Of a stretch of DNA of 64,000 nucleotides, positions 27,016-51,893 are shown piece by piece. The DNA is taken from contig OZ038379.1 of NCBI GenBank assembly GCA_964036045.1, positions 22,816,001 through 22,880,000 of the forward strand. The letters are read 5' to 3'. Below the pieces are notes generated by a model. The model was not told the origin of the DNA. It saw only the letters and a program-made list of their open reading frames with translations, and searched no databases. This DNA is from Eutreptiella sp. 'Long Island Sound 2002' (taxonomy: Eukaryota; Protista; Euglenida). Numbering within the stretch: position 1 is the first letter of the stretch; each line of letters starts with the position of its first letter. The position numbers and the translations under genes are program-made.

Positions 27016-28500
27016 GAAGCACGATTGATGCAGCCATATGCACTGAATCATGTGCAAGCCTCCTGCAACTTAATCAACAATTTTAGCACATTGCGTGCTC
27101 TTCAAAGTGGTTGCAAGGAAGGAGGGACCGAGGGAAGGAGTTTTGGCCATGGTTCCCCACATATTTACTTTGCTGGGGCGGACGTGGCTATGGGCATGGA
27201 CATTTGGTTTCTTGCTTCTCGAATTTCAAAGTGTGTGTGGAATCTGCACAACTCTTCGGCCCATGTCACGTTGGGTTGTGCCCGATTGTGCCTTTGTCAC
27301 CCAAAGTTATAGAAAGAAAGCCTCTTCGGACAATGCTACTGTTGAGCGCACCCGCTTGTGCCTTACGTGGTGCCAAATTGGATATCATTGGAGGTAGTGA
27401 TTGAGGATTCACGTTGCCCAATTTTGAGATCTGTTGACAACTTCAATCGCGGTGGTGCACACTCGACCTTTGCCCATCGTGGCTCAATGTCAAGACAACA
27501 ATTATAGAGTTGGAAATAGGCAAAGAAAATCGAAATCTATGCCAATGGCGACATTGGACTGAAACTTCCTCAAACTAATACAACAGCTCCTTTGCTGGGC
27601 GCAAGCACAAATCAATTCATGCCAAATGAGTTTATGCTGGCCGCTTGTGTGCATGTATGGTGAAAGACGCACATGCATTGACTCCCTTACGCCCGTGCAA
27701 GCCCACTCATAGTGGGACCCCGGTGGTCATACCAATTTAGTGAGCGGTACACGAAGCAAACAACGCAAAAATCTCTTCAGAAGGCCATTATCGGGCTGCA
27801 GTACAACAAGAGCGTAAGACTTTTGTTCGCCGCACGCCAACCATGGTGTTTCACCCAAAGATTTCGATATTTCACGTTACACGTAGCTTCAAACCGCAAA
27901 TGAACCATGCACCTCTCCGGCAATTGGTTTTCTCATCCCGGTCTTTCGTGGGGCCTTTTCCCTTCTTACATTGTGACATGTTTGTAAGCAAAAACATTTC
28001 AAGTGAATGACGAGGCAACATCTCGACACCGAGTGCCATCAAGTGCCCCAACATGCACAAAAGTCCAAGGTATCGCAGTTTCGATGCCCATTTTGACAAA
28101 ACCGGATGGTACTTAGCTCATGTCCCATTGCACAGCACAAGAGGTCTCCAAGCAAAAGATTCGAACAAAAATTCAGATATTAATTCCCAGTTTCGGTCGG
28201 TCGACCGGTCGGTCAGGAGTGGTTTCTAGTCGGAAAATAACAATGGGCCAATGAAACTACAAGGCACTGGTCCTTGTGGCGAGGGGCCATTTTCCTGCTG
28301 GAGGCGGTACTGGATAGGGCACTGGCGACCGTCGAAATCGACCCCACTATGGATGCGGATTCATCACATTTTCGAATGAGGATCACTTGCTATCTACCCG
28401 TGTCACCTAATCATTTTAACATAGATAGCCATCAAACTGATAGCCAAGCAAAATCATGCACTGGCCCCAGTAATCACTGCCCCAACCGCAGTGGGTACAA

Positions 28501-28521
28501 CCCCTTTTGGCACCTTTCTAG
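28501..28521 (+). promoter_or_regulatory. Candidate upstream splice acceptor (trans-splice site or 5'UTR intron acceptor)
   Basis: ccccttttggcacctttctag ends 31 nt before the ATG. Confidence 0.4.
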
Positions 28522-28552
28522 GCGTGCAATACCTCACTTCGGGTCACCTGAA

Positions 28553-28965
28553 ATGGGCAAATACGGAACCAACGGATTGAACGAGAGCTCGGAAATGTAT
28601 GCTGTTCAGTGCCCAGAAGACGGCAGTGCAGCTCTGAGGGCGTCACATGTGGCAGACATGGACCCCCGGGCGTCGCACGAGGAAAGGCGTCTTAACGACC
28701 CAGAATATCTCCCATTTCAAAAAACAGCAGACCTTAGCCCCGAAGACGCTTGCGAAGAATCTTCAGCGGGTGCATCATCCAACCTCTCTGTCGTGGATGA
28801 TGCAAGTGACGTAGTCAGCTTGGGTGAGACCTCGACACGAACATATCATTCCGAGTACCTGATGCCGTTCAAAATTGGGGCAACCAACAACGAGGCCAAC
28901 ATAATGATGTGGAAAGGCTTGCTTCATCCATGCGAACAGACCAATCCTCCGGCGTGCAACCCCAA
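28553..28965 (+). CDS. eIF4G: eIF4G exon 1; contains YHSEYLM (28844-28864) and the start of Cys module 1
   Basis: ATG preceded by pyrimidine tract plus AG (28501-28521); reads MGKYGTNG...TRTYHSEYLMPFK...LLHPCEQTNPPACNP; donor aa|gtatgc, phase 2. Confidence 0.78.
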
Positions 28966-29070
28966 GTATGCCTGCATTGGTGTTACAAATCGAGCCCAGC
29001 CTCTAGACTCCGCTGTAGGAAGGTTTCGGTGGAGCTACGTTGCTTGAGCTCTCCTGCTCCTCACTTACAG

Positions 29071-29224
29071 TGCACCCTGCCCGCTTCGTGACGTACCTCG
29101 AGAATGGTGCCTTCTCTGCCTGCATGGGAAGGTTCACGACGAATGCGTCGGAGAAAAGCCACCTACGCACCCTTGCCCAAGGGTCTGGGGAAGTTGTCGA
29201 TACGGTGACCGCTGCATCTACAAG
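29071..29224 (+). CDS. eIF4G: eIF4G exon 2 (Cys/His modules)
   Basis: Acceptor ctcctgctcctcacttacag; reads APCPLRDVPREWCLLCLHGKVHDECVGEKPPTHPCPRVWGSCRYGDRCIYK; donor aag|gtgtgc, phase 0. Not present in this frame in the supplied ORF track. Confidence 0.85.
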
Positions 29225-30489
29225 GTGTGCAATATGCACTACCCTGTTTGTACCTAATTTGCTGCAATGTTCCACTGTTCAGTCAGAGTGAGGCTTGCCT
29301 TTTTCTTCGGGAAAATTCACTATTGGACACTGTGGCCCTCACCCTATTTTTCTTGGGTCCTCTTTATCTGCACCTGCGTAAAAAGCGTGCGCAATCAATG
29401 CTGCACAGAATATTAGAAAAAGCTGTTCTGCTTCAGTCACACAGGGTATGGTGCCAGGTAGGGGGGCCACCTCTGTTTAACCCTGAAAGCACTTTCCTTT
29501 GAAAATGAACAAGAAGGCCAATAGCCTGGAGTGCGTGTGTTATGTTTGCTTTTTTGTTCGAGTGTGTGCCTTGTGCTCCTGTTGTGAGGTCCAGGAACGA
29601 CAAACTGCAGGCATTGGTCAGTTTCACTAAGAGCAGGCGCGCGCGCGTACGCACACAGACACACGCATGCACAAAGTGTACCACACCTTTGCACATTTTG
29701 TCAAGGCCAGGTTTGCGTTGTCTCTGCGCAGTGGCATACGCAAATTGCTCAAAAAAACCCCATGGAATCCACCTATTCGGGGACTGCTAAGGGGTTATAA
29801 ATTGGTCTGGTTTTGAAATCAGTGCCGTAGCGCTTCAATTCGTTCCTCCAAGACGAATTATTCGTCAATTCTGTGGCGAACAGTGTGATTGCTGTGGTTT
29901 TGTGGCACACCCAGTGCAGTCCGTCCCATAGTTTAAACGCGGAACTCTGTGCTCCAACAACATTCCAAAAAGGAGGCTGATCTTAGTTAGCTGCTCACAG
30001 TTAGTTTAGCTGCAGCCCACCTGAGCTGCCCTTCGCAGGTATTGCGTGTCATTTTGAAATACTGAGTTAACACCGAAGCGCAGAGCACCGCGTTGCCCGG
30101 TGCGCTTGCCCACCTTGCCTCAACAACTATGCAACACTGGAGTATTAACGATGAGATTCACGTTTTTCACGAGTGAACCACAGCTGTGTGTACAACTATA
30201 CTGGTGCACCGTCGAAACTATGACCGTCGTGACAGAAGTTGCAGCCAGAGAAAAGCAACGGAATTCGGTACCAGTAACAGTGAGCAATGCTGTTTCCCAA
30301 GACGCCAGCAACTGCCACCACAGTGTTTCGGTGCAAATTTTTAGGCGAATGCCCCACCCCCCGTGACTTCGTATCACAAGGGCTCACTCAGCACAGTAGC
30401 ATTTTCCGTGCCAACCCAGTCAGAGGTCAGATAGCAGTATCGGGATATACCAAGAATCCCATGCGTGTTGCTTTCTCTTTTGCACGCAG

Positions 30490-30810
30490 GACATGCCCGC
30501 CATTTGGTGCCTTCGGTGTCTTCGGAGAATGCCACACGGCCACTGCGATCTCATGAGGCCCCCAGATAACCTCGAGGTCTTTGCGTTTGACAAGCTTCCT
30601 GGGGGACCGCCTGGGTGTTTCCCCGCGGAACCGGTGATGACAGACGCAGCCCCCAGTCACCCTCGCGTCGCGCCTCTCGACCCGAATCTCGTGGCATACG
30701 ACCCCGTTGCCCAGCAGTTCCCCTACGACTCTGCCACGCCTCAGCTCGACCGCGTTCCCTCGAACTATCAGCCTGAAGGAGAGCCGCCCGTGGCGGAGTA
30801 CACCCCAACG
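30490..30810 (+). CDS. eIF4G: eIF4G exon 3
   Basis: Acceptor tctcttttgcacgcag; DMPAIWCLRCLRRMPHGHC completes module 2, then Pro-rich sequence; donor acg|gtatcg. Confidence 0.85.
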
Positions 30811-31014
30811 GTATCGCTTCTCGCCTGCTGGCAAGGGGGCACTCAGGCTCAGGACGCAGTTTTAGAGCCAGCCCGGCTTTCGGTTATCGAGGTGCGAAAC
30901 ACTGCTCGCTTTTTCTCACAGAGGAACCTTCACGCGTGATTGCAAAACCCTGGATTCTGGGTGGCACACTTTGAAGTTCTTCTTTTCAATTCCGGACTGT
31001 TTCTTCCTCTGCAG

Positions 31015-31431
31015 GAATTCAACACGCCTCAGTTTCCCTGTGGCAACATGCCCAGCTCCATGCACAAGGACGAGCAGGAGCTAGATTACGGCACACCAGG
31101 TTATCGCAGCCCGGAGAACGAAGAGGGATTCCACCCCGGCCCCGCTCCCAACCCCGAATTTGATGGTTATGGTGGCCCAATGTACGAATTCCAGGCGCAC
31201 CGTGAATCTCAACCAGAAGAGCCCCGGCCGCCATATGGGTATCCTCCTGGGCCTGGCCCGGCACCTGAAGCGGCAGCATACGGATACGGTTATGCATCTT
31301 CCCGCGAACCTCAAGATGACGGGTTTGCGGCCTTTAACGGCTTCCCGGAATGTGGCACACCAGCCGCTGGTCCATGTTTCGGTTACCGAGGCCCACGCGA
31401 CGAAGCCCTGCAGACTCCACATTCTTTTATG
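31015..31431 (+). CDS. eIF4G: eIF4G exon 4 (Pro/Gly/Tyr-rich)
   Basis: Acceptor ttcttcctctgcag; EFNTPQFP...TPHSFM; donor atg|gtatgt; phase 0-0. Confidence 0.85.
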
Positions 31432-33051
31432 GTATGTCAACAGTGAATCGTATGCGTTCTTTCAAGGGACGACGCACGTTCTGCAGGGGTCGAGTGCAGT
31501 CCGGACACTGATACAACGGGACACTCTCAAACCGAAAACACATTCCGATGGTTTGCATCCAACCCGACGTCGATCACCTGCACCATTGCGATAGGATTGG
31601 TTCAAAATTTCCTTTTTGCTATTCTCGTCGTGTCTTCACCCGAAACTGCACAGGGGATATGGCTTTTTCAACCAGCTCGGTCCAAACCGAAATCTGGTTG
31701 CCTTGGGGTCAGGGGCGGTAAAATATAGCTGTGGAGACCTGCAGCATCACAGACTAAAGCCCCCCTAACCTCATTCAATCATCAAGGGCGTGATATGAAT
31801 CGGAGGCGATAGATGGCAGTTTGCACCGAAACCGAGGCAACAGCAGGGCCTTCCAGTTGAGGCCAAGGTTCAATGAGTGCACCTTGGCTGCGGGTGAAAA
31901 ATGCCAAAGCTACCCGGGATGATCAAAATTCGTTCCTGTTTATGCTGTATTTCTGTGTTGTGTTGTGATGCGCGACTTGCAAACAACGCAGAAACGTGCA
32001 TACGCGTGGACATCCTCCAAAGTGTCGCGCAAAATCCATTTGTTGGGGTCATCATAACGTCCGGGCAACCATCGTCACTGTTCCACCGATTGGATCTCTT
32101 CCGGCTCCAAAAAAAAAATGTTGTCAACCACCACCACGTAGCAGCAGGCCCTTCTCATTGGGCAAAGCAGCGTCTCTTTTGGGCAAAGCAGCGTCTCTTT
32201 GTAAGAGCATGCCGGAGCACATCTTTTTGACATATGGACGTTTGTGTCCACGCAATATCGCCCACGATGTTAAACGCCTGTTGGTCTGCTTGGTTTGGAA
32301 GATACCCCGTCGCTTGAAATGCGAACCCACAAAACTGCAGCGGACCCCAGGCTGCAGCAATTTGAGGGGCTCGGCAATCGGATGGTCCAAACTGCCAACT
32401 GTAAATGCCAGGTCTGTAGATGGCTCCACATGCATGTAATTGGTGAGAGCAACGTTGCACATTTTTGGGTTGAGTTTTTTTTTTAAGAGAAACAAAGTGG
32501 CGCTGCAAGTCCAAGAATGTAGAAAAGAAAAAGAACAAGAAAAATGGTGGCTAAATATTTCTATGCCACGCACATTAGTTCCTAGTCCATACCTACGGGT
32601 GGCTATCTTTTTTGTGCATTCAGTCTGTACTTATTCGTGTCCCCGACTTTCCAATTTGGAAGACAATCTTTGTGTGCAAAATACAATTTATGGATCACCT
32701 TTGGATTGACACGTGTACGAAGACGCAAGCCTGTTGCAAGGCGCTTGCAAAGCACACTACTCAAAAAAATTAGCCCAGCGTTGGAGTGTCCCAAAACCAA
32801 AGTTACGAATGACGTTTGCGAAAAGGCAAATTACCTGCATTTACCCCTTGGTTTTAGATAATTAACCTCTGGGGCATCATTCTGCCTCGCAGTGTCTCCA
32901 TAATTTTTTTTGAGACATATGAAATCTGCTACAAGTGTGCCCTGCTTGCCTCCTTGCATGCTCATATGCTTATCTCACCCTGAAGCCTAAGAAGGTAGTC
33001 AAGTGTTGTGGTGAAACCGAAAGTGCCTCTGCTCTCCCCTTGAACCATCAG

Positions 33052-33358
33052 GATGCAGAACACCCCAGTTTTGCTGGCTACCCAGCAAGCCGGGGCCCTT
33101 CTGGAGACTTTGGCGAACCTTTTCCGAGTCCATCATACCCTACACACCGCAAGTTCGTTGAGCCATTCACCCCCAGCAGTGCGCCTGCAGGATGCCGCCC
33201 CGAACCATTTCTAAGGCATGAGTACGAGGGTTACGGAAAGGGCAAGGGCAAGGGATACAGTGTGGGACCAGACGAACCACCAGCTTCCCCAGAATGGCAG
33301 CATCAAAGCAACCATTTCTCCAGAAAACGTGATCAAGCAGGCCGCGATTGCTCCGAAG
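33052..33358 (+). CDS. eIF4G: eIF4G exon 5 (Pro-rich, GYGKGKGKG)
   Basis: Acceptor ccttgaaccatcag; DAEHPSF...GRDCSE; donor gaag|gtgtgg, phase 1. Confidence 0.8.
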
Positions 33359-33515
33359 GTGTGGCCTCCTCATGCTAGTTTGCTCCTAAAATGTCGACGC
33401 ACAGACACAGCCCATCGCACGCTCCGTTGCAGCCTCGCACGCACACAGCCCCTGCACAATTTTAAATTGCACACAAAGCCCCTGCACTACTTTGCAGCAT
33501 CACATGCGGTTATGA

Positions 33516-34700
33516 TCTAGGGTCACTGAGCCGGTGCAACCAATAAGGTCTTATAACCCTCTTCACCGAGCTGGAGGAACCAGTAAGGTTTTATCACCCC
33601 TTCACCAAGCTGGTGGAACCAGTAAGGTTTTATGTCCCTCTTTAAGGTCTAGCCCGGACGTACCCTTTCTAGCAAGCAGCAGCAGCAAGCACACGTCAAA
33701 TGGCAAAAAAAGCGGAACTCCGTTGTGGTGGTTCAGATTCAGCTGAAATTTTGCTGGATGAAACCTGCGAGTATGAACCACACACAAATCACACGAAGTT
33801 GGAGCTAGAACCCAACAATGGCCGGGATCGGGTGCCACAAGTGGCAGTGGTTCAAACCCCGTCAAAAGTTGCCAACAAACGCCTTCTGGCCAGTTTAAGT
33901 GTCTCGGATGTGCCTCGGAGGGTGCCGTTTGTATTGGAAGCAACCTAGATGGTGAAGAAGCGCTTTGGGGCACCCTCACGTGGCTATTTGCACCCAAATC
34001 GCAGCCTCTAGAACGCCTTTTTGGCGTCAACAATGGCCAACATGATCCTTGAAAGTGGCTTTATGCACCTTCTTTTTCGAGTCCCACCTTCCTTCGCTGT
34101 GTTTGACTGCCATGCCTTGTGCAACCTTGTGGTGATAAGTAGTGATGAACAGGAACAGCGCAAGGTATTTGCACACATGCCACCAACATTAGCCTTTAGG
34201 AGTGGTACACTGCACACATGCTAGGGCAGGGTAGACGGGATCACGTGTGGGTCAAAACGTTGTCCAAGATAAGTTTTTTCCTGAAGTTTTCCGTACACCA
34301 CTGGGGGTGCCTGAACAAGTGGATGTGGCCCTTTTTGAGCCTGCGGTACCCCATTTTGGGCCCCAAAAGATCTAAAAAGGCTTAAAAATGGGCCATCTTG
34401 GGCTGAAGAAGGTAAAAACATTTTTTTTCACAAGTTGTTCTGGTTTTTTGGGCATGTTCGAACGGGTGTTTTTTTAGCCCGTGTTGAGCCTATGGTTACC
34501 CGTTTTGCTCAAACATCACAACAAGTGCTTGAAAATGGGCTAGTCCACGACCGACGCAGGGTCCAAAAGGGTTTAAAAATGCATTTTTTTGAAAAGTGGA
34601 CCCGTACCATTTGGGATGCTTATGCAAGTATTTGTGGTCTGTTCGGAGTCCACAATTACCTTTTCAGCCCTCGGACCCATGCATTGCCACATTGCATGTC
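33516..34700 (+). mobile_element. Single diverged copy of the modular element (subfamily C) in eIF4G intron 5
   Basis: Starts tagggtcactgagccggtg, repeats tcaccgagctggxggaaccagtaagg, then (CAG/CAAG)n, core and about one 162-bp-like unit; collinear with the reverse complement of 41900-44230. Confidence 0.7.
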
Positions 34701-35425
34701 GGCGCATATGCGCCAATGTATTGCAGCCATATCAAGTTAATTTGTTGGCTTCTGCTTTGCTTCTTCCTTTCTTGTATATACCTTTACCAGGACTGAATAT
34801 TGGAGCCCAGCTGGTGAGGACAGGAATATCGCACACGATCAACCATGCACTGCACAGATAGCAAACCGCGCACTTTGTCCATGCCCTGATCCTCATCCTT
34901 GTTTGTGCCCGTGTTTGTATCCCCGCACAGACCCCGAAAACCTTTTGGAAGGAAATGCAAATAGACAGTGTCTGTTTCTGGTGTGTGTCACTGGCATCAT
35001 TTTTTTGCTCAATTTGGTGCAGAATATGGTAGTACAGGCCCATCTACCCCCCTCCGTAAAGCTCAGAGGACAGCGCAACAAGGATTGTGTGCAACATTTG
35101 GAAGTTACGTCTGAGGTGGGTGGTATGGTGTGAGGCAGGGAACCTGCAGCCCTGCACCCTGCCAACACCGCAGGGTGACAGGTGGCCCAGTGAAATTGTG
35201 GACACGTCCGTTTGCCCCTTGCCTTTGAGAAGGAGTTTCACCTTCAACGCGCATGCGTGTGTCATCTTGTAGCTGCCTGTTGCTAAGATGTTGTTCCCCC
35301 CCCCTGGACCGAAACACGCACTGGTGCCGTGCAATCAATGGTGCTTGCCAGTGAAAGCAAGCCATGCTATGGACCGCTTTGCTTTGCTTTCCAGCTGCCC
35401 CTCTCCCTTGTCCAATTGTGTTCAG

Positions 35426-35513
35426 GTCCAGACCATTATCGGTACATGCGCTCAAGGTATTTCCCTGAACGTGAACACAGCTACACACCGGACTCTTGTC
35501 GTGACCCCAACAG
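35426..35513 (+). CDS. eIF4G: eIF4G exon 6
   Basis: Acceptor ttgtccaattgtgttcag; (G)PDHYRYMRSRYFPEREHSYTPDSCRDPN(R); phase 1-2, exactly what is needed to bridge exons 5 and 7. Confidence 0.78.
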
Positions 35514-36426: not shown

Positions 36427-36838
36427 GGAGTATCCACCTTCGAGCCCGATGGGCCATCCTCGTGACCACCATATGGATTGCTTGATGGATGCCTCTCGAG
36501 GGTACCCCAAAGATCGCCCCGCTGACCAGTGGGAATATTCGGACCACGCACGTGATTTCCCCTCTGAGCATTACCCACGGGAGTATCCCCGCAGTTATGA
36601 GTACCCAAGGGATCACCCTCGTGATTACCCTCAGGACTACAACCGGGATTACAGCCGTGATTATTACAACCGTGAGTATCATCGAGACGGGCCGCGGGAG
36701 TACCATCGTGGAAATCGGTGGGAACACCCAGGCAGGCAATACGGTGGCAGAGGGCATCCATGGTATTCCAGGTTTCCTACGAATGATATGCACGAGCACC
36801 GGACTGTGGAGGCGGTCAGGTCCGAGCTGTCGAATCAG
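36427..36838 (+). CDS. eIF4G: eIF4G exon 7 (RDY/REY repeats)
   Basis: Acceptor cgtctgctcttgcag; EYPPSSP...AVRSELSNQ; donor cag|gtctgc. Confidence 0.87.
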
Positions 36839-37730: not shown

Positions 37731-37913
37731 GTTGCCAACCCTTTCAAGCACCAGCGCGAGCACTGCCAGAAGGATTTTGTGGCAAAGAAGGTGCAGGGGA
37801 TTCTGAACCGCATCACGCCTGAGAAGTATGAGACTCTGTCTCAGCAACTGGTGGACCTGATTGCCCCGCACATGGCTGAGGAATCCGAGTCCACCACGGA
37901 GATTTGCAAGGAG
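37731..37913 (+). CDS. eIF4G: eIF4G exon 8, start of MIF4G
   Basis: KKVQGILNRITPEKYETL matches the eIF4G MIF4G opening motif (ILNKLTPxxF); boundaries cctcag|gtt and gag|gtgtga. Confidence 0.92.
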
Positions 37914-40090: not shown

Positions 40091-40239
40091 GTGAGCACAA
40101 AAATCTTCGAAAAGGCAGTTGGGGAGCCCCAAAACAGTACCATGTATGCTGATTTAGTGCAGCTGTTGCACATCACACAGCAGAGACTGACTCGCGAAGT
40201 TCGTGCTACCGGACGGCCCGCTGCTGCAGCCTCAATCAG
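40091..40239 (+). CDS. eIF4G: eIF4G exon 9 (MIF4G)
   Basis: VSTKIFEKAVGEPQNSTMYADL matches IFEKAxxEPxFxxxYAxL; donor ag|gtatgt, phase 2. Confidence 0.92.
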
Positions 40240-40724
40240 GTATGTCTCGTGCCATGGTGGATGGCTGGTCTCCTGAGGTGTCCAAACACATGCACTCTTT
40301 GGTGCATGCTTCCTTAGACTCCTTTCACAAATGCATCCTGACCTGGATTGTACTTGGAGTCTGCTGTGCACTGCTCTGATCCTCCTGGGTCCCATGGTGA
40401 ATCAGAAAGGGTTGTCAGGGCATACAGATTGGTCTGGTATGAACAGCACAACCATCAGAGTTCAGTAAGTTGGTCAGGGTGTCAGTCCTGTGGCCCTCCC
40501 AGGCAGGTGAGGGGGGGGGGGGTTCGGGGTACAGGACCATAGGAAAGCCGACCATGGGCACGTTGGGTTTTCAAAGGGGGGGGGTCAATAGAGCCCCCAA
40601 AATCTTGGGGGGGGGGGGCTGGGTGGGAAAGGGGCTCAATGGACAAGGCACCATTCTTGCATAGAGAAGAGGAAGAGGCACCGCTTTGTCTCTTGTTCAT
40701 GTCTTCCCACTATGGGGAATCCCA

Positions 40725-41150
40725 AGAAGGCAGGGGTGATGTCCCCCCTTCTGATTTCATCCCCTCTTTTGGGGACCACCGAGAACGCACAGGTTACAAA
40801 GCAATTCCGCCCATTTGTGGGCCCCCGAGAAGGCAGGGGTGATGTACCCCCTTCTGATTTCGTCCCCTTTTCTGGGGAAGCCTGAGAGCGCAGGGATTGC
40901 ATAGCAATTCCGCCCATTTGTGGGCCCCCGAGAAGGTCGGGGTGATGCAGCCAGTTCTGATTTTGTCCCCATTTCTGGGACCCCGAGAGCGCAGGGGTTA
41001 CGAAACAATTCCGCCCACTTGTGGGCTCCCGAGAAGGCAGGGGTGATGTAGCCACTTGTGGTTTTGTCCCGTTGTTTTGGACCCTCCGAGAATGCAGGGG
41101 TTATGCAGCAATTCCGCCCAATCTTGGGCCCCCGAGAAGGCAGGGATGAT
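40725..41150. repeat. ~102-bp minisatellite, about 4 units
   Basis: aaggcaggggtgatg anchor near 40728, 40830, 40933, 41034, 41137; a partial unit recurs near 44860-44910. Confidence 0.9.
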
Positions 41151-41399
41151 CAACCCCCCCCCCCCCCCCCCCAATTGGCGGCCGAATTCGGCCGACCTCG
41201 CCGATTTGTTCCGCCAATTTGTTGGGTTTCTGAATTTTGCCGATTCTTTGGGTTTCTGTTATTTTGCCCATTCGTTCTGCCGAATTGTTGGGGCCTCTGG
41301 GATTGTAAAACCTTCGCGCCCTGACACTTTGAAGAAGGCCAAACAGCCCCGCGTGCTGAAAAACATTACAGTCGCACAGAGGGTGGAGAAGTACGGTTC

Positions 41400-41620
41400 C
41401 TCTTCTTCTGGCAGGCTTTGTGTGTGCATGGAAAACCAATTTTCTCAGCAAGACAAGTGACAAAAAATGCCAAAAAAATCGGTCCTGGATTTGATCCCAA
41501 GGGTGATCCCAGGGTGCATACCATTGGACCATTGCCTTGTACTGCCATGTACTCAGGTCAGGTCAGCTCAGCTCAGGGACCATGTACAGACTGAGAGACG
41601 ATTGCAAATGAGTGCTGCAC
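41400..41620 (-). mobile_element. SINE-like element with tRNA-derived head
   Basis: Minus strand A-box-like aatggtccaatggta (41519-41533) and B-box-like gggatcaaatcc (41487-41498); flanks similar to 44440-44660. Confidence 0.55.
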
Positions 41621-41880
41621 CCTGGGGGGCGGCCGGGCCCGGTCCTTGTATGCGACCCCCAGCCCCCCCCCCCCCCCCCGGGTTTTGAAAGATAGTGGTG
41701 CCGGGTCGGCCACCAACAAGTGTCTCTAGAGAAAACTGTCCTTTTTTTTTCATACTGTGTGTTGATACTCAAAATACTCAAAATTTTGTAGAGAATTCAT
41801 ATTTGTGTAAAAACAACAAGAAAAATTTTTGACTTGAAGGAGGGCTACAGGAGGGCTACAGGCCCTAACAGCAACCACAA

Positions 41881-44235
41881 CCCTAGCCCTAACCCTAATC
41901 AAGACTGAATATTGGGACCGAGCTGGTGGGGGAAGGAACATTAGATATGAATGGTGAGGGACACCAATGAGTCACACATTGAAGGCCGTTGACAAAGTGG
42001 AATCAGCTTGCAAGTGATCCCCTTCACCACAAGGCCCACTTTCAAGGCTTTTGCGGACTTGTGAGGGGCCAAAATGCCCCAAAATGGCCTCAAAATGGGC
42101 TCATTTCACCCGCTTGTGCACCCCAAATGGTGTGGGATGAGTTTTGGAAAAATGCGTTTTTGACCCATTTTCAACCCATTTTTGGTCCCAAAACAGCGCA
42201 TCTTCAAGGCATTTTGGGATTTGCGGAGGACCAAAATGGGCCACCACAAGCTCAAAACAGTCCAAAAACACTTGCTTTAGCATCACACATGGTCTAGGAT
42301 CATTTTTGAAAAAAGTCATTTTTCTGCCCCATTGGACCATATTGACCCATTTGGGCACCCACCTGTTTGGGCTTGAGCTTGCAGCTTGCCGCAGCCTACT
42401 GGGCCTGGGTACGGGGGTCTAGGCGTCCATTTGGGCAATTTTGAGGCGTGGAAACCACAAAAAGTGGGGGGTTGCGGGTGGACTAGGTGCCCTCGGAATC
42501 GCGTTTTCAGCCATGTAGCCAAAGATATGGCCTGCTCTTGGTTTGTGGCTGTCGCCCGCCAATCTGCACAAAATTTGGGGCTTCTGGGGGCCTTTTTGGG
42601 CCGTTTCCGGGACATATGGTGGAGTTAGAGGGCCGCAAAGGGCTCGTTGACACAGGATAGTCAAGCCGCACATGGAGTGTACCCACACTTTCCCTTTGTT
42701 TGGCCGTTTTGAATGGGTTCTAGGGCTGTTTTGGGCCAAAAATGGCTGTTTTTGGCCCTAAACTGCAGTTTTTGAAACTGAGGTCCGCCACTTGCGACAC
42801 CCGTTCCCGGCCGCCACCGTAGAGTTTCTGGCTCATACTTTGTGTGGTTGTCCCTCACACCCATAGGTATCATCCACCAAAATTTCAGCCGAATCCGAAG
42901 CACCACGACGGAGTTCTGATTTTTCCCCATTTCGCGCGTGCTGCTTGCTGCTGCTTGCTGCTTGCTGCTGCTGCTGCTAAACCTGGTAGGTCCACCCTAT
43001 ACCCTAAAAAGGGTTATAAAACCAAGACTGGTTCCACCAGCTCGGTGACCCTAGCCCTAACCCTAATCAAGACTGAATATTGGGACCGAGCTGGTGGGGG
43101 AGGGAACATCAGCTATGACTGGTGAGGGACATCAAGAATGATTCACACATTGATGGCTCTTGACAAAGTGGAATTAGCTTGCAAGTGAACCCCATCACCA
43201 CGAGGCCCACTTTCAAGGCTTTTTGGACTTCTAAGGGGCCAAAATGCCCCAAAATGGGCTCAAAATGGGCTCATTTCACCCGTTGACGCACCCCAAATGG
43301 TCTAGGATGAGATTTGGAAAAATGCGTTTTTGACCCATTTTTGACCCATTTTTGGTCCCAAAACAGCGCATCTTCAAGGCATTTTGGGATTTGCGGAGGA
43401 CCAAAATGGGCCACCACAAGCTCAAAACAGTCCAAAAACACTTGCTTTAGCATCACACATGGTCTAGGATCATTTTTGAAAAAAGTCATTTTTCCGCCCC
43501 TATTGGACCATGTTGACCCATTTGGGCACCCACCTGTTTGGGCTTGAGCTTGCAGCTTGCCGCAGCCTACTGGGCCTGGGTACGGGGGTCTAGGCGTCCA
43601 TTTGGGCAATTTTGAGGCGTGGAAACCACAAAAAGTGGGGGGTTGCGGGTGGAGTAGGTGCCCTCGGAATCGCGTTTTCAGCCATGTAGCCAAAGATATG
43701 GCCTGCTCTTGGTTTGTGGCTGTCGCCCGCCAATCTGCACAAAATTTGGGGCTTCTGGGGGCCTTTTTGGGCCGTTTCCGGGACATATGGTGGAGTTAGA
43801 GGGCCGCAAAGGGCTCGTTGACACAGGATAGTCAAGCCGCACATGGAGTGTACCCACCGTTTTCTTTTGTTTGGCCGTTTTGAATGGGTTCTAGGGCTGT
43901 TTTGGGCCAAAAATGGCTGTTTTTGGCCCCAAATTGCAGTTTTTGAAACTGAGGTCCGCCACTTGCGACACCCGCTCCCGGCCGCCACCGTTGAGTTTCT
44001 GGCTCATACTTTGTGTGGTTGTCCCTCACACCCATAGGTATCATCCACCAAAATTTCAGCCGAATCCGAAGCACCACAACGGAGTTCTGATTTTTCCCCA
44101 TTTCGCGCGTGTTCCTTGCTGCTTGTTGCTTGCTGCTGCTGCTAAACCTGGTAGGTCCACCCTAGACCCTAAAAAGGGTTATAAAACCAAGACTGGTTCC
44201 ACTAGCTCGGTAACCTTAACCCTAACCCTAACCCC
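41881..44235 (-). mobile_element. Two tandem ~1168-bp copies of the modular element (subfamily B) with CCCTAA-like hexamers at both ends and at the junction, in eIF4G intron 9
   Basis: gactgaatattgggaccgagctggtgg at 41903 and 43071; core ggactaggtgccctcggaatc is the reverse complement of 11950-11985; hexamers at 41881-41898, 43049-43066 and 44211-44235. Confidence 0.88.
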
Positions 44236-44439
44236 CCCCCCCTTCACCCCCGGTTGGACGCCCCCCCCCCCCCGACCCCCGGCAGGAACATCCCCCGACC
44301 CCCGGCTGGACCCCCCCCCCCCCCCCTACTCCCATGTATTGAAAGATATTTGGGGGGTGGGTTGCATCAGGACCAGTTGTAGTCACCCCCCCCGGGGGCT
44401 GCACACCCACCCAGCACACAGTGGGATGCAAATGGGAAG

Positions 44440-44660
44440 CCTGTGTGCATTTTTCTTCTTCCAAGAGGCTTTGTTTGTGCACAAAGAACCAATTTTCTCA
44501 GGGGGACAAGTGAAAAAAAATGCAAAAAAATTCCGGTCTGTAAACAGGGGGAATTGAACCCACGCCAGCAAAAATGTGTGCCTGGGCATATACCACTGGG
44601 CCACCATTGTGCACTGCTATACAAGTGCTCAGGGACCATGTAGAGACCGAGAGACGAAAT
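44440..44660 (-). mobile_element. SINE-like element with tRNA-derived head, related to 41400-41620
   Basis: Minus strand ggtggcccagtggta (44591-44605) and gggttcaattccc (44548-44561); shares cagggaccatgtaxagacxgagagacga with the 41575 copy. Confidence 0.6.
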
Positions 44661-44999
44661 TTTTTTCGAAAATTGAGAGATATTTTGCGTTTCCACATGA
44701 CTGCAACTATTAAGCAACCATAAGGAAGGTGTGTTCGGGGCCTGGGACTGAGATCCAAGGCACCGGGAGCCTGTCTTGCCGAAAAATTGGTGCGCCGATT
44801 TGTTGGGGTTTCTTCCCCCATTTGGGGGGGGGGGTTGGATGATGCTGCCACTTTTCATTTTGTCCCCTTTTCTGGGTATCCCCAAGAACGCAGGGGTTAT
44901 GTAGCAACTCAGCTGCAAGTGTGCGTGCTGTGCACAACCGGTTTGCTCACTGCTGCAAGCAGCAGTTTGCAAAAGCCAAGGAGGACCTCAAACGGCGTT

Positions 45000-45600
45000 G
45001 TGGTATGGTTACCCTTGGAGTGAAGGTTGAGGTGGAACATTTGCTCCGCCAAGCACGTGGTTTGGGTTTGAATTGGCAATGAATTGTTGCAAATTTGAAG
45101 CGGTTGCTGACTTATTTGGACTTGAGTGCCTCTAGCCCTAAGGCTCAGCTCATGCAACACGTGTATAATCACGCCGATTCCCTTCATACATATGTCGGTC
45201 TCCCTAAGGACAGTGCATTTGTGCTTGAGGAACCCATGGCTGATGAGGCCGAAGGCGACGATGAAGACATTGTTTGTGTTCATTGCCTTAGTGGTGATGC
45301 ATATCCTCATTTGTGAAGGTGCACATTCTGCCACAGTTGGATGGCACCAGTTGTGCTTGACTCCAACCTTGCACGAGGTTCCTGCTGGTTGCTGGTTGTG
45401 CCCGGAGTGTGTCTCTGGAGTGGTCCAGGTAGCCGCTTGGCTGACCTTGACTATGCTCTTTCAAGGGCTACAACGGAGGCATCTACTACCTCCGGCTCTA
45501 CTTCCAACTCCAATTCCGACTCAAGCTCCAACTCGGGCTCGAGCTCTTCCTCTGACTTTGACTGTGACTCTGATTGACTCCAACTTTGACTGTGACTCTG
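45000..45600 (+). pseudogene. Frameshifted PHD-finger ORF relic, probably TE-derived, in eIF4G intron 9
   Basis: CVHC (45275) ... frameshift ... LICEGAHSATVGWHQLCLTPTLHEVPAGCWLCPEC, followed by a Ser/Asp-rich tail. Confidence 0.7.
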
Positions 45601-46099
45601 ACTAGGTCATGTGGTTCTCATGGAAGCTCTTGGTGGGGCGCTACACACATGTGTACCCGGAATTGACCGGGGACCGAGTGTCCTTAAGCACAAATACCAC
45701 CGTTATTTGAACCACGAAGGTCCCGAGGTTGGTTTTGTGGGGTTCCGTCAATTGAGCCTTTTGGGGGGTGGGGGGTGTAGCCAAGGGGCTCTATCAATCC
45801 CCCCCCCCCCCAATTGAAAGCCCGTCCACCCATGAGCCCAAGGCTGTGAAGCATTTTGCAAGGAGGCCACGAAAACTATTGAACGTCGTACCAGATATTT
45901 CGCTAGTTTGCTCTCACCCAGAGGCATGAGTGACCCAGGCTGACATCGATGAGTTTTGGACTCAAAATTTGGAATCGTTAAAGCCGCATGGCACATGCCA
46001 GCTGGCCAGGTGTCCAAAGTGTGCTCTGACTGTGGTGTATTTGTGTTATGCATGGCTCCCATGTACGCCCACTATCTTAAATTGTTTCCACATGTGCAG

Positions 46100-46209
46100 G
46101 ACACTGATCCTCAACCGCTGCCAGAGGCAATTCTATTCTGTCTGTGAGCCATCCAGTGACCCTGAGGAGTTCGAGATTCTGCATGCGAAGCACCGCAAAA
46201 GATGCCAAG
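46100..46209 (+). CDS. eIF4G: eIF4G exon 10 (MIF4G)
   Basis: (R)TLILNRCQRQF matches FRxLLLNRCQxEF; phase 2-1. Confidence 0.92.
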
Positions 46210-46814: not shown

Positions 46815-46936
46815 GTAACGCGAAATTGGTGGCTGAGGTATACCGCCGAAAGCTCCTGCCAGGGCTGATCATCGAAGAAGTCATCCACTTCCTGGTGAAG
46901 GACGACAATGTGGTGCCAGTTGCAGACCGGATGGAG
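46815..46936 (+). CDS. eIF4G: eIF4G exon 11 (MIF4G)
   Basis: GNAKLVAEVYRRKLL matches GNIKFIGELFKxxML; phase 1-0. Confidence 0.92.
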
Positions 46937-51000: not shown

Positions 51001-51135
51001 GTGCTCAGCGCCCTCTTAACCGTGGCTGGCCCACAAATGGACTGGGAGCGCCCTGTCATTTGTGATGCTTGGCGATGCATTCTAGAAATGAGCTCAAGCG
51101 AGAATGTGGTTCCTCGAATCCGCTTTCTCCTGCAG
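51001..51135 (+). CDS. eIF4G: eIF4G exon 12 (MIF4G)
   Basis: VLSALLTVAGPQMD...VVPRIRFLLQ matches LCxLLTTxGxxLD...RIRFMLQ; phase 0-0. Confidence 0.92.
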
Positions 51136-51761: not shown

Positions 51762-51893
51762 GACCTCATCAAGCTACGCCAAAACGATTGGAATCCACGC
51801 CGGTCCGTAGATTCCCCGAAAAAGCTTGCCGAAGTCAACAAAGATTTTCCACAGCCAACTTATGCTGCATGGCATGGAGGTTTGTGGTTTTGA
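51762..51893 (+). CDS. eIF4G: eIF4G exon 13, probably terminal
   Basis: DLIKLRQNDWNPRRSVDSPKKLAEV matches DVIDLRxxxWxxRRxxxGPKTIxQI; TGA at 51891-51893, T-rich sequence follows. An alternative donor at 51880 cannot be excluded. Confidence 0.85.
   Translation, partial: DLIKLRQNDWNPRRSVDSPKKLAEVNKDFPQPTYAAWHGGLWF

Follow-up and report, generated by a model that had tools for sequence, protein, structure and literature searches.

Can the scaffold protein of the cap-binding complex read RNA by itself? This question is raised by a gene in a stretch of 64,000 nucleotides from Eutreptiella sp. 'Long Island Sound 2002' (contig OZ038379.1, positions 22,816,001 to 22,880,000; referred to as the window), which encodes a putative eIF4G with two successive Cys/His units behind its eIF4E-binding motif. 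eIF4G is normally a sequence-blind scaffold, and the choice of mRNAs is left to eIF4E paralogues, eIF4E-binding proteins (4E-BPs) and separate RNA-binding proteins. A zinc-finger pair beside the eIF4E site would give the cap-binding complex direct, hard-wired RNA reading. The explanation that we regard as probable is that a CCCH-derived two-zinc RNA-binding unit was duplicated and fused to the eIF4G scaffold in a euglenid gene whose transcript receives a spliced leader (SL) by trans-splicing. The literature searched contains no description of the ligand layout or of the fusion to eIF4G, while eIF4G and the CCCH-derived finger are of known kinds.

Joining of exons 1 to 3 reproduced exactly the two Cys/His strings that a first-pass annotation of the window, made from its letters, had described. 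Unit 1 (amino acids 125-163; 28925..28965 and 29071..29146, + strand) is interrupted by intron 1 (28966-29070), which lies between the second and the third Cys of the unit, and unit 2 (amino acids 171-208; 29168..29224 and 30490..30546, + strand) is split by intron 2 (29225-30489) after C-I-Y-K. Both units have a length of about 38 residues and follow the pattern H-P-C-x6-8-C-x5-C-x9-C-x2-C-x5-H-x2-C, which provides eight putative ligands each; they are 33% identical to one another. Twelve of the 29 Cys of the protein are located within the 84 residues spanning both units, and none of 20,000 shuffled versions of the protein showed the eight-ligand pattern. A search of the rest of the 64-kb window for another copy of the module found none.

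To determine whether the gene is expressed and spliced as proposed, sampled words of window positions 28500-31500 were sought in RNA runs. Four estuary metatranscriptomes contain 41-50% of these words, approximately the exonic share, and RNA runs of the source organism were likewise retrieved. Contigs from three estuary metatranscriptome runs (X1-X3), which come from different samples and studies, were aligned to window positions 27800-33700, showing no mismatch (100% identity). Exact joins of 28965 to 29071 and of 29224 to 30490 are present in the RNA contigs of these three independent metatranscriptomes, which confirms the splice model claimed for both junctions. The contigs contain further exact joins (30810/31015 and 31431/33052), all introns are bordered by GT..AG, and the next contig segment matches at 35428, revealing an intron at 33359-35425.

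The RNA contigs and the translation define exon 1 (28522..28965, + strand as for all exons), in which the start codon at 28553-28555 is the first AUG after the SL. According to the sequence, 28965 is the last base of this exon, the GT of the intron begins at 28966, exon 2 comprises 29071-29224 and exon 3 begins at 30490. Exon 2 (29071..29224), defined by its contig junctions, completes unit 1 and opens unit 2, of which it contains the first half. The contigs place the end of exon 3 (30490..30810) at 30810 and no further downstream, correcting the earlier model. They also support exon 4 (31015..31431), where a P/Y/G/E-rich linker starts, and exon 5 (33052..33358), the end of which is fixed by the loose end mapping at 35428.

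Some RNA data deviate from this picture. One contig runs upstream of the SL acceptor (28447-28521) and low-depth contigs lie within intron 2 (29196-29521); both are probably unprocessed pre-mRNA (outron and intron, respectively) or DNA carry-over in the metatranscriptomes. A contig of the source organism from 2013 (X5) is short of one base at 28874 and one at 28877, where the three other RNA data sets match the window, and these gaps are most likely sequencing errors in old reads.

Post-transcriptional control is thought to be dominant in euglenids, and the mRNA's 5' end bears the mark of trans-splicing. An AG acceptor for the SL is located at 28520..28521 (+ strand), preceded by a pyrimidine tract, and the mature mRNA starts at 28522. 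Contigs X1, X3 and X5 begin at 28521, right after the pyrimidine tract and the AG. The loose end of X3, ATTTTTTTTC, together with the following G, corresponds to the 3' end that is conserved in the euglenid SL, which reads TATTTTTTTTCG in Euglena gracilis (PMC4778363) and ends with ...CUAUUUUUUUUCG in Eutreptiella sp. (PMC3621762). The SL-type 5' end on the mRNA therefore identifies the gene as euglenid and the transcript as SL trans-spliced. In E. gracilis, 53.6% of the assembled transcripts bear the SL (PMC4778363).

The complete gene comprises 13 exons at 28522-51893 (+ strand) and encodes a product of 980 amino acids, with exons 6-13 partly or wholly predicted by homology. RNA support reaches the start of exon 6 (35426..35513); its donor and all later junctions were predicted using the Euglena longa ortholog (P0003), a further relative (P0027) and frame-keeping GT..AG sites as guides. 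The length of the contigs beyond 33360, about 2.16 kb, is compatible with the 1.33 kb of remaining coding sequence plus a 3' untranslated region. From the N- to the C-terminus, the protein consists of an acidic N-terminus containing YHSEYLM, unit 1, unit 2, a low-complexity linker of about 500 residues rich in Pro, Tyr, Gly, Glu and Arg, and a C-terminal MIF4G domain. Exon 7 (36427..36838), predicted from a tblastn search with P0027, GT..AG sites and the reading frame, encodes an Arg/Tyr/Pro/Asp-rich part of the linker.

The predicted MIF4G domain starts in exon 8 (37731..37913; 55-70% identity to P0003 and P0027) and continues in exon 9 (40091..40239), for which homology to the same two proteins was used. 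Exons 10 (46100..46209), 11 (46815..46936) and 12 (51001..51135) and exon 13 (51762..51893), which contains the end of the domain and the stop codon, were likewise predicted by homology to P0003 and P0027. Taken on their own, exons 8 and 9 match consecutive parts of the MIF4G profile PF02854 (positions 2-28 and 37-67). P0003 matches this profile with 89 bits (E 4.5e-25), and window exons 8-13 align to P0003 at 55-69% identity. In a sequence search of the PDB, the best solved relatives of the domain were all eIF4Gs, namely human eIF4G1, eIF4GII and eIF4G2 and yeast eIF4G, with E values down to 6.5e-22.

YHSEYLM (amino acids 98-104; 28844..28864, + strand) fits the canonical eIF4E-binding motif YxxxxL-phi and lies 27 residues before unit 1, as seen in the sequence and the homolog alignment. 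Its counterparts are YSENYLL-S-F in Ploeotia, YDIDFLL-R-F in Entosiphon and FSEEQLL-Y-W in a second Ploeotia paralogue, and in all four motif-bearing proteins the distance from the motif to the first H-P-C is 25-27 residues. In an AlphaFold2 (AF2) model of the Ploeotia protein a helix is placed on this motif. On sequence, membership of the host protein in the eIF4G family, as claimed before, is hence well supported, since it combines a MIF4G domain best matched by eIF4Gs with a YxxxxL-phi motif. At their N-termini, the window protein (28553-28576), the E. longa ortholog and the Entosiphon homolog (P0023) all begin with M-G-K-(Y/F), and N-myristoylation of the conserved Gly2 is a possibility.

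The first-pass annotation had named a lack of Cys/His conservation in homologs as evidence against its proposal. Exon 2 alone (51 amino acids) was compared with 1.84 billion representatives, which yielded 19 proteins, ten of them matching the whole exon at 44-67% identity; named sources are E. longa, Ploeotia vitrea (two paralogues), Entosiphon sulcatum and Lentomonas. Full-length forms with the tandem units followed by MIF4G are present in E. longa (P0003), Ploeotia (P0022 and P0024), Entosiphon (P0023) and Lentomonas (P0004). Across ten aligned proteins, all 16 Cys/His of the tandem pair are invariant, and in 25 of 25 individual units the residues H, P, C, C, C, C, C, H and C fill their respective columns. 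This conservation of the ligands, which extends over five euglenid genera, shows that the pattern is not due to chance. In P0005, a genomic read-through fragment from an E. longa-like organism, the two breaks coincide with introns 1 and 2, so that the intron positions are shared with that organism.

Other columns of the unit are less constant. Both copies in the window have Asp where a CCCH finger has its His, as noted in the first annotation; this column holds D in 12 of 25 units and otherwise G, N, K, E and others, and since it varies among relatives the Asp is not a ligand. An aromatic residue is found at +2 after the second Cys in 23 of 25 units and at +2 after the third Cys in 18 of 25.

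To determine what kind of zinc unit this is, domain and structure searches were carried out with the E. longa and Ploeotia orthologs in place of the spliced module of the window; Pfam was also searched with single window exons. With these exons and ten homologs, Pfam returned only CCCH models, all below threshold and all on the segment from the second to the third Cys: the best scores with PF00642, PF18044 and PF18345 were 20.2-22.7 bits where the cut-off is 29, and 16.6 where it is 20.5. No match to the module was found in NCBIfam, and nothing significant for the tandem pair in a profile search of the PDB or in the comparisons with the PDB (Foldseek), the Swiss-Prot part of the AlphaFold Database (AFDB), the viral BFVD and the ESM Atlas (features and shape). 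VIA-align against 48,161 chains gave no Z of at least 2. The weak neighbours in PDB, AFDB and Atlas are all CCCH proteins. Thus, a strong match to a described domain, which the first-pass annotation had named as evidence against a new module, was not obtained with Pfam, NCBIfam, PDB, Foldseek or VIA-align. A scan of the whole window with Rfam gave nothing that reaches threshold.

The resemblance of the first half to a CCCH finger, also claimed before, applies to the spacing of the three Cys but not to the His at +4, which is present in only 1 of 25 units. The second half differs from the CCHC zinc knuckle (PF00098, C-x2-C-x4-H-x4-C) in its spacing, C-x2-C-x5-H-x2(3)-C, and has no Pfam match. 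In the comparison with cross-braced domains of the RING/PHD type, the unit has eight ligands; the sole match was a faint one to zf-rbx1 (RING-H2, E 0.038), and there was no structural match in the PDB. Judged from its residues, the unit is an uncurated, putative eight-ligand zinc unit composed of H-P-C...C...C and C-x2-C...H-x2-C.

AF2 modelled the E. longa tandem pair confidently, with a mean predicted local distance difference test (pLDDT) score of 85.5 and above 90 over unit 2. According to DSSP, the two units have a common secondary structure, which the Ploeotia model repeats: the first Cys is followed by a helix, a 3-10 turn separates the second Cys from the third, and another helix lies on C-x2-C. 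The partition of the ligands is illuminated by four homologs (P0011, P0013, P0014 and P0017), in which the H-P-C-x6-C-x5-C half precedes a canonical CCCH finger, significant in Pfam, that replaces C-x2-C...H-x2-C. Since such a CCCH finger uses four ligands of its own, the first half would have to draw on the leading His to complete its zinc site. For site 1, the likelier candidate for the fourth ligand is the invariant His of H-P-C, and by homology we infer a sequential partition, as opposed to a cross-braced one, with H, C, C and C in site 1 and C, C, H and C in site 2. Each unit would most likely bind two zinc ions, giving four in the tandem pair. The first-pass annotation had described a two-zinc module; with eight ligands per unit this number would double for the pair.

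The unit is not confined to eIF4G and occurs in other euglenozoan proteins as well. One of them is a 606-amino-acid protein of E. longa without MIF4G (P0019), in which a canonical CCCH finger is combined with two single units that each have all eight ligands. Unit 2 can be superposed on the AFDB models of the trypanosomatid proteins G0TY62, G0UYN3 and Q4DVG7 over 46-47 residues, with a root-mean-square deviation of 1.4-2.2 A and 30-35% identity; in this suggestive result, a prediction is compared with predictions from the AFDB cluster library (E 0.006-0.05), and the resemblance is one of fold. On these models, the unit seems to be spread through Euglenozoa, including predicted trypanosomatid RNA-binding proteins. 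Given such predicted carriers, the structure and specificity of the unit would inform parasite biology.

Three metagenomic proteins of 234-260 amino acids (P0006, encoded at L002:3909-4676, P0008 and P0015) contain the tandem units and no MIF4G. Their N-termini read Y-T-H-N-P-Y or S-H-D-P-Y, and these motifs fit the MKT1-binding consensus of trypanosome RNA-binding regulators, (Y/W/T)(R/T/Q)H(N/D)PY (PMC3985637). The contig L002 has a GC content of 64% and is gene-dense, with neighbours that are mostly ORFans. A compact protein of 370 amino acids with tandem units and a MIF4G-like domain (P0009) is encoded at L001:1061-2173. L001 is a metagenome contig of 27.6 kb with 20% GC that is gene-dense and apparently intron-less; the neighbours include an SNF2 fragment, an SF1 helicase and ORFans, and the contig may stem from a giant virus or from a protist with a very high AT content. 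Scans of IMG/VR with the module alignment and with P0009 detected no relative, and the metagenome scan additionally gave one locus with the first half only (L003).

How could such a protein work? In the reading that we favour, site 1 would be a CCCH finger that has given up its C-terminal His and borrows a His from in front, and site 2 would be a knuckle of the form C-x2-C...H-x2-C. By its CCCH hallmarks the tandem pair would be a putative binder of single-stranded RNA. RNA binding by the pair is likely because the first half keeps the basic-aromatic-Gly signature and the aromatic base-contact positions (23/25 and 18/25), and since the pair adjoins the site where eIF4E docks, it would touch capped mRNA at its 5' end. 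In this way the cap-binding complex would gain an element that reads sequence. We infer zinc binding, the partition of the ligands, RNA binding and its target. That all this is built on a chance Cys-rich stretch or an artefact of wrong splicing is vanishingly improbable; the exact junctions in three independent RNA sets, the shuffles and the ligands that are invariant in five genera rule it out.

The RNA target might be the SL itself. The module is one short linker away from the eIF4E-docking helix and would therefore lie over the first nucleotides after the cap, which in euglenids are the SL. eIF4F would then treat cap plus SL as one combined mark and give preference to mRNAs that are trans-spliced. 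The idea arises because the SL end ...CUAUUUUUUUUCG holds a U-rich tract of the type that CCCH tandem fingers prefer; TIS11d, for example, binds UAUU half-sites. We consider this extension very doubtful. If true, an SL-reading eIF4F would provide a built-in selection of SL-mRNAs, a task that kinetoplastids and nematodes solve otherwise.

Several observations weigh against an RNA-reading eIF4G and have to be set beside two other explanations. Unit 1 of the window and of E. longa is devoid of the basic and aromatic RNA-stacking residues (C-N-P-N-A-P-C-P-L in the window) while retaining all ligands, so that, by this comparison of residues, at least that half of the pair may no longer be RNA-binding in the Euglena lineage; most of the contact with RNA may there fall to unit 2. 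This loss would suit units that are structural or protein-binding zinc modules, for instance a clamp that extends the eIF4E interface or a dock for another factor. As a clamp, the units could replace the 'non-canonical' eIF4E-binding segment that other eIF4Gs and 4E-BPs have behind their canonical motif, and the conserved spacing, with the units beginning 25-27 residues after YxxxxL-phi, agrees with such a role. The second half (W-C-x2-C-L-x-G-x2-H-x2-C) is, moreover, unlike any RNA-binding finger, having only the faint RING-H2 match. However, the CCCH-type basic and aromatic signature is kept in most units, and neither a RING nor a PHD or B-box structural match was found in the PDB with Foldseek and VIA-align. 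The unit also occurs next to a canonical CCCH finger in P0019 and with an MKT1-type motif in P0006 and P0008, a context typical of mRNA-binding regulators. We hold a purely structural or protein-binding role to be unlikely.

The architecture downstream of the units gives rise to the other explanation. No MA3, W2 or PABP-binding region was seen in the product, which has a single HEAT domain, and the E. longa ortholog lacks the canonical eIF4E-binding motif in the alignment. The protein might accordingly act as a regulator of the MIF4G type, as a repressor or as an activator of specific mRNAs comparable to DAP5-like proteins or eIF4E competitors, in which the fingers select mRNAs while a conventional eIF4G encoded elsewhere performs bulk initiation. 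There is a precedent for such specialisation in the kinetoplastid relatives, which have five specialised eIF4Gs (PMC5862402, PMC5750579). Yet the MIF4G domain is closest to those of the bona fide eIF4G1/2/3, and in deep-branching euglenids the canonical motif extends to L-L-x-F, as it does in human eIF4G. Yeast and trypanosomatid eIF4Gs are likewise not known to have MA3 or W2. A dedicated regulator of this kind is quite unlikely in our view.

One long intron of the gene contains further elements. Intron 9 (40240-46099, 5.9 kb) is filled with repeated blocks at 40500-44900. They include near-identical pieces of open reading frames at about 42141-42625 and 43311-43796, and many short repeated peptide-like units are found at about 40600-41150. 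An open reading frame at 45126-45602 (+ strand) in the same intron shows a faint PHD-finger match (E 0.05) and ends with W-L-C-P-E-C; this frame probably belongs to a transposable element and not to the eIF4G gene.

Compared with the eIF4G family (human eIF4G1, eIF4GII and eIF4G2, yeast eIF4G and trypanosomatid EIF4G1-5), the window protein shares the MIF4G/HEAT-1 domain and the N-terminal YxxxxL-phi motif, and with the yeast and trypanosomatid proteins also the lack of MA3 and W2. It differs by the two eight-ligand Cys/His units between the eIF4E-binding motif and the linker. The earlier statement that known eIF4Gs have no zinc fingers agrees with the literature searched, in which we found neither an eIF4G with zinc fingers nor a description of such a unit. 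A review of trypanosomatid eIF4F contains the word 'zinc' 0 times (PMC5750579), and a multispecies survey including Euglena reports only MIF4G for all eIF4Gs (PMC5862402).

With CCCH fingers such as the TTP/TIS11d tandem, MBNL1 and CPSF30/Yth1, the unit has in common the C-x6-8-C-x5-C of its first half and the basic-aromatic-Gly signature after the second Cys. The modelled helix after the first Cys and the 3-10 turn are likewise reminiscent of the TIS11d fold, and the tandem layout resembles tandem zinc finger domains. In contrast to these fingers, the unit has no His at +4 after the third Cys (except for 1/25), an invariant His two residues before the first Cys and an obligatory fused second site, C-x2-C-x5-H-x2-C; Pfam scores remain below the gathering cut-offs, and neither Foldseek against the PDB nor VIA-align gave a significant superposition on solved CCCH structures. 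The trypanosomatid proteins annotated as 'C3H1-type domain-containing' or 'putative RNA-binding' (G0TY62, G0UYN3, Q4DVG7) and P0019 have the single unit in common with the window protein, but differ by other architectures (canonical CCCH fingers, other regions) without MIF4G. The three UniProt accessions were not mentioned in the literature searched, and the trypanosome CCCH census makes no mention of this eight-ligand unit.

A close functional parallel is the MKT1-PBP1 route. In T. brucei, an RNA-binding zinc-finger protein recruits MKT1 (PMC3985637), which in turn recruits EIF4E6-EIF4G5 (PMC8051951). The translation of the window protein contains no H(N/D)PY motif. Both systems would follow a common logic, in which selected mRNAs obtain an eIF4F-like complex through an RNA-binding zinc finger; in contrast to the trypanosome route, the window protein joins finger and eIF4G in one polypeptide, which would make an adaptor needless.

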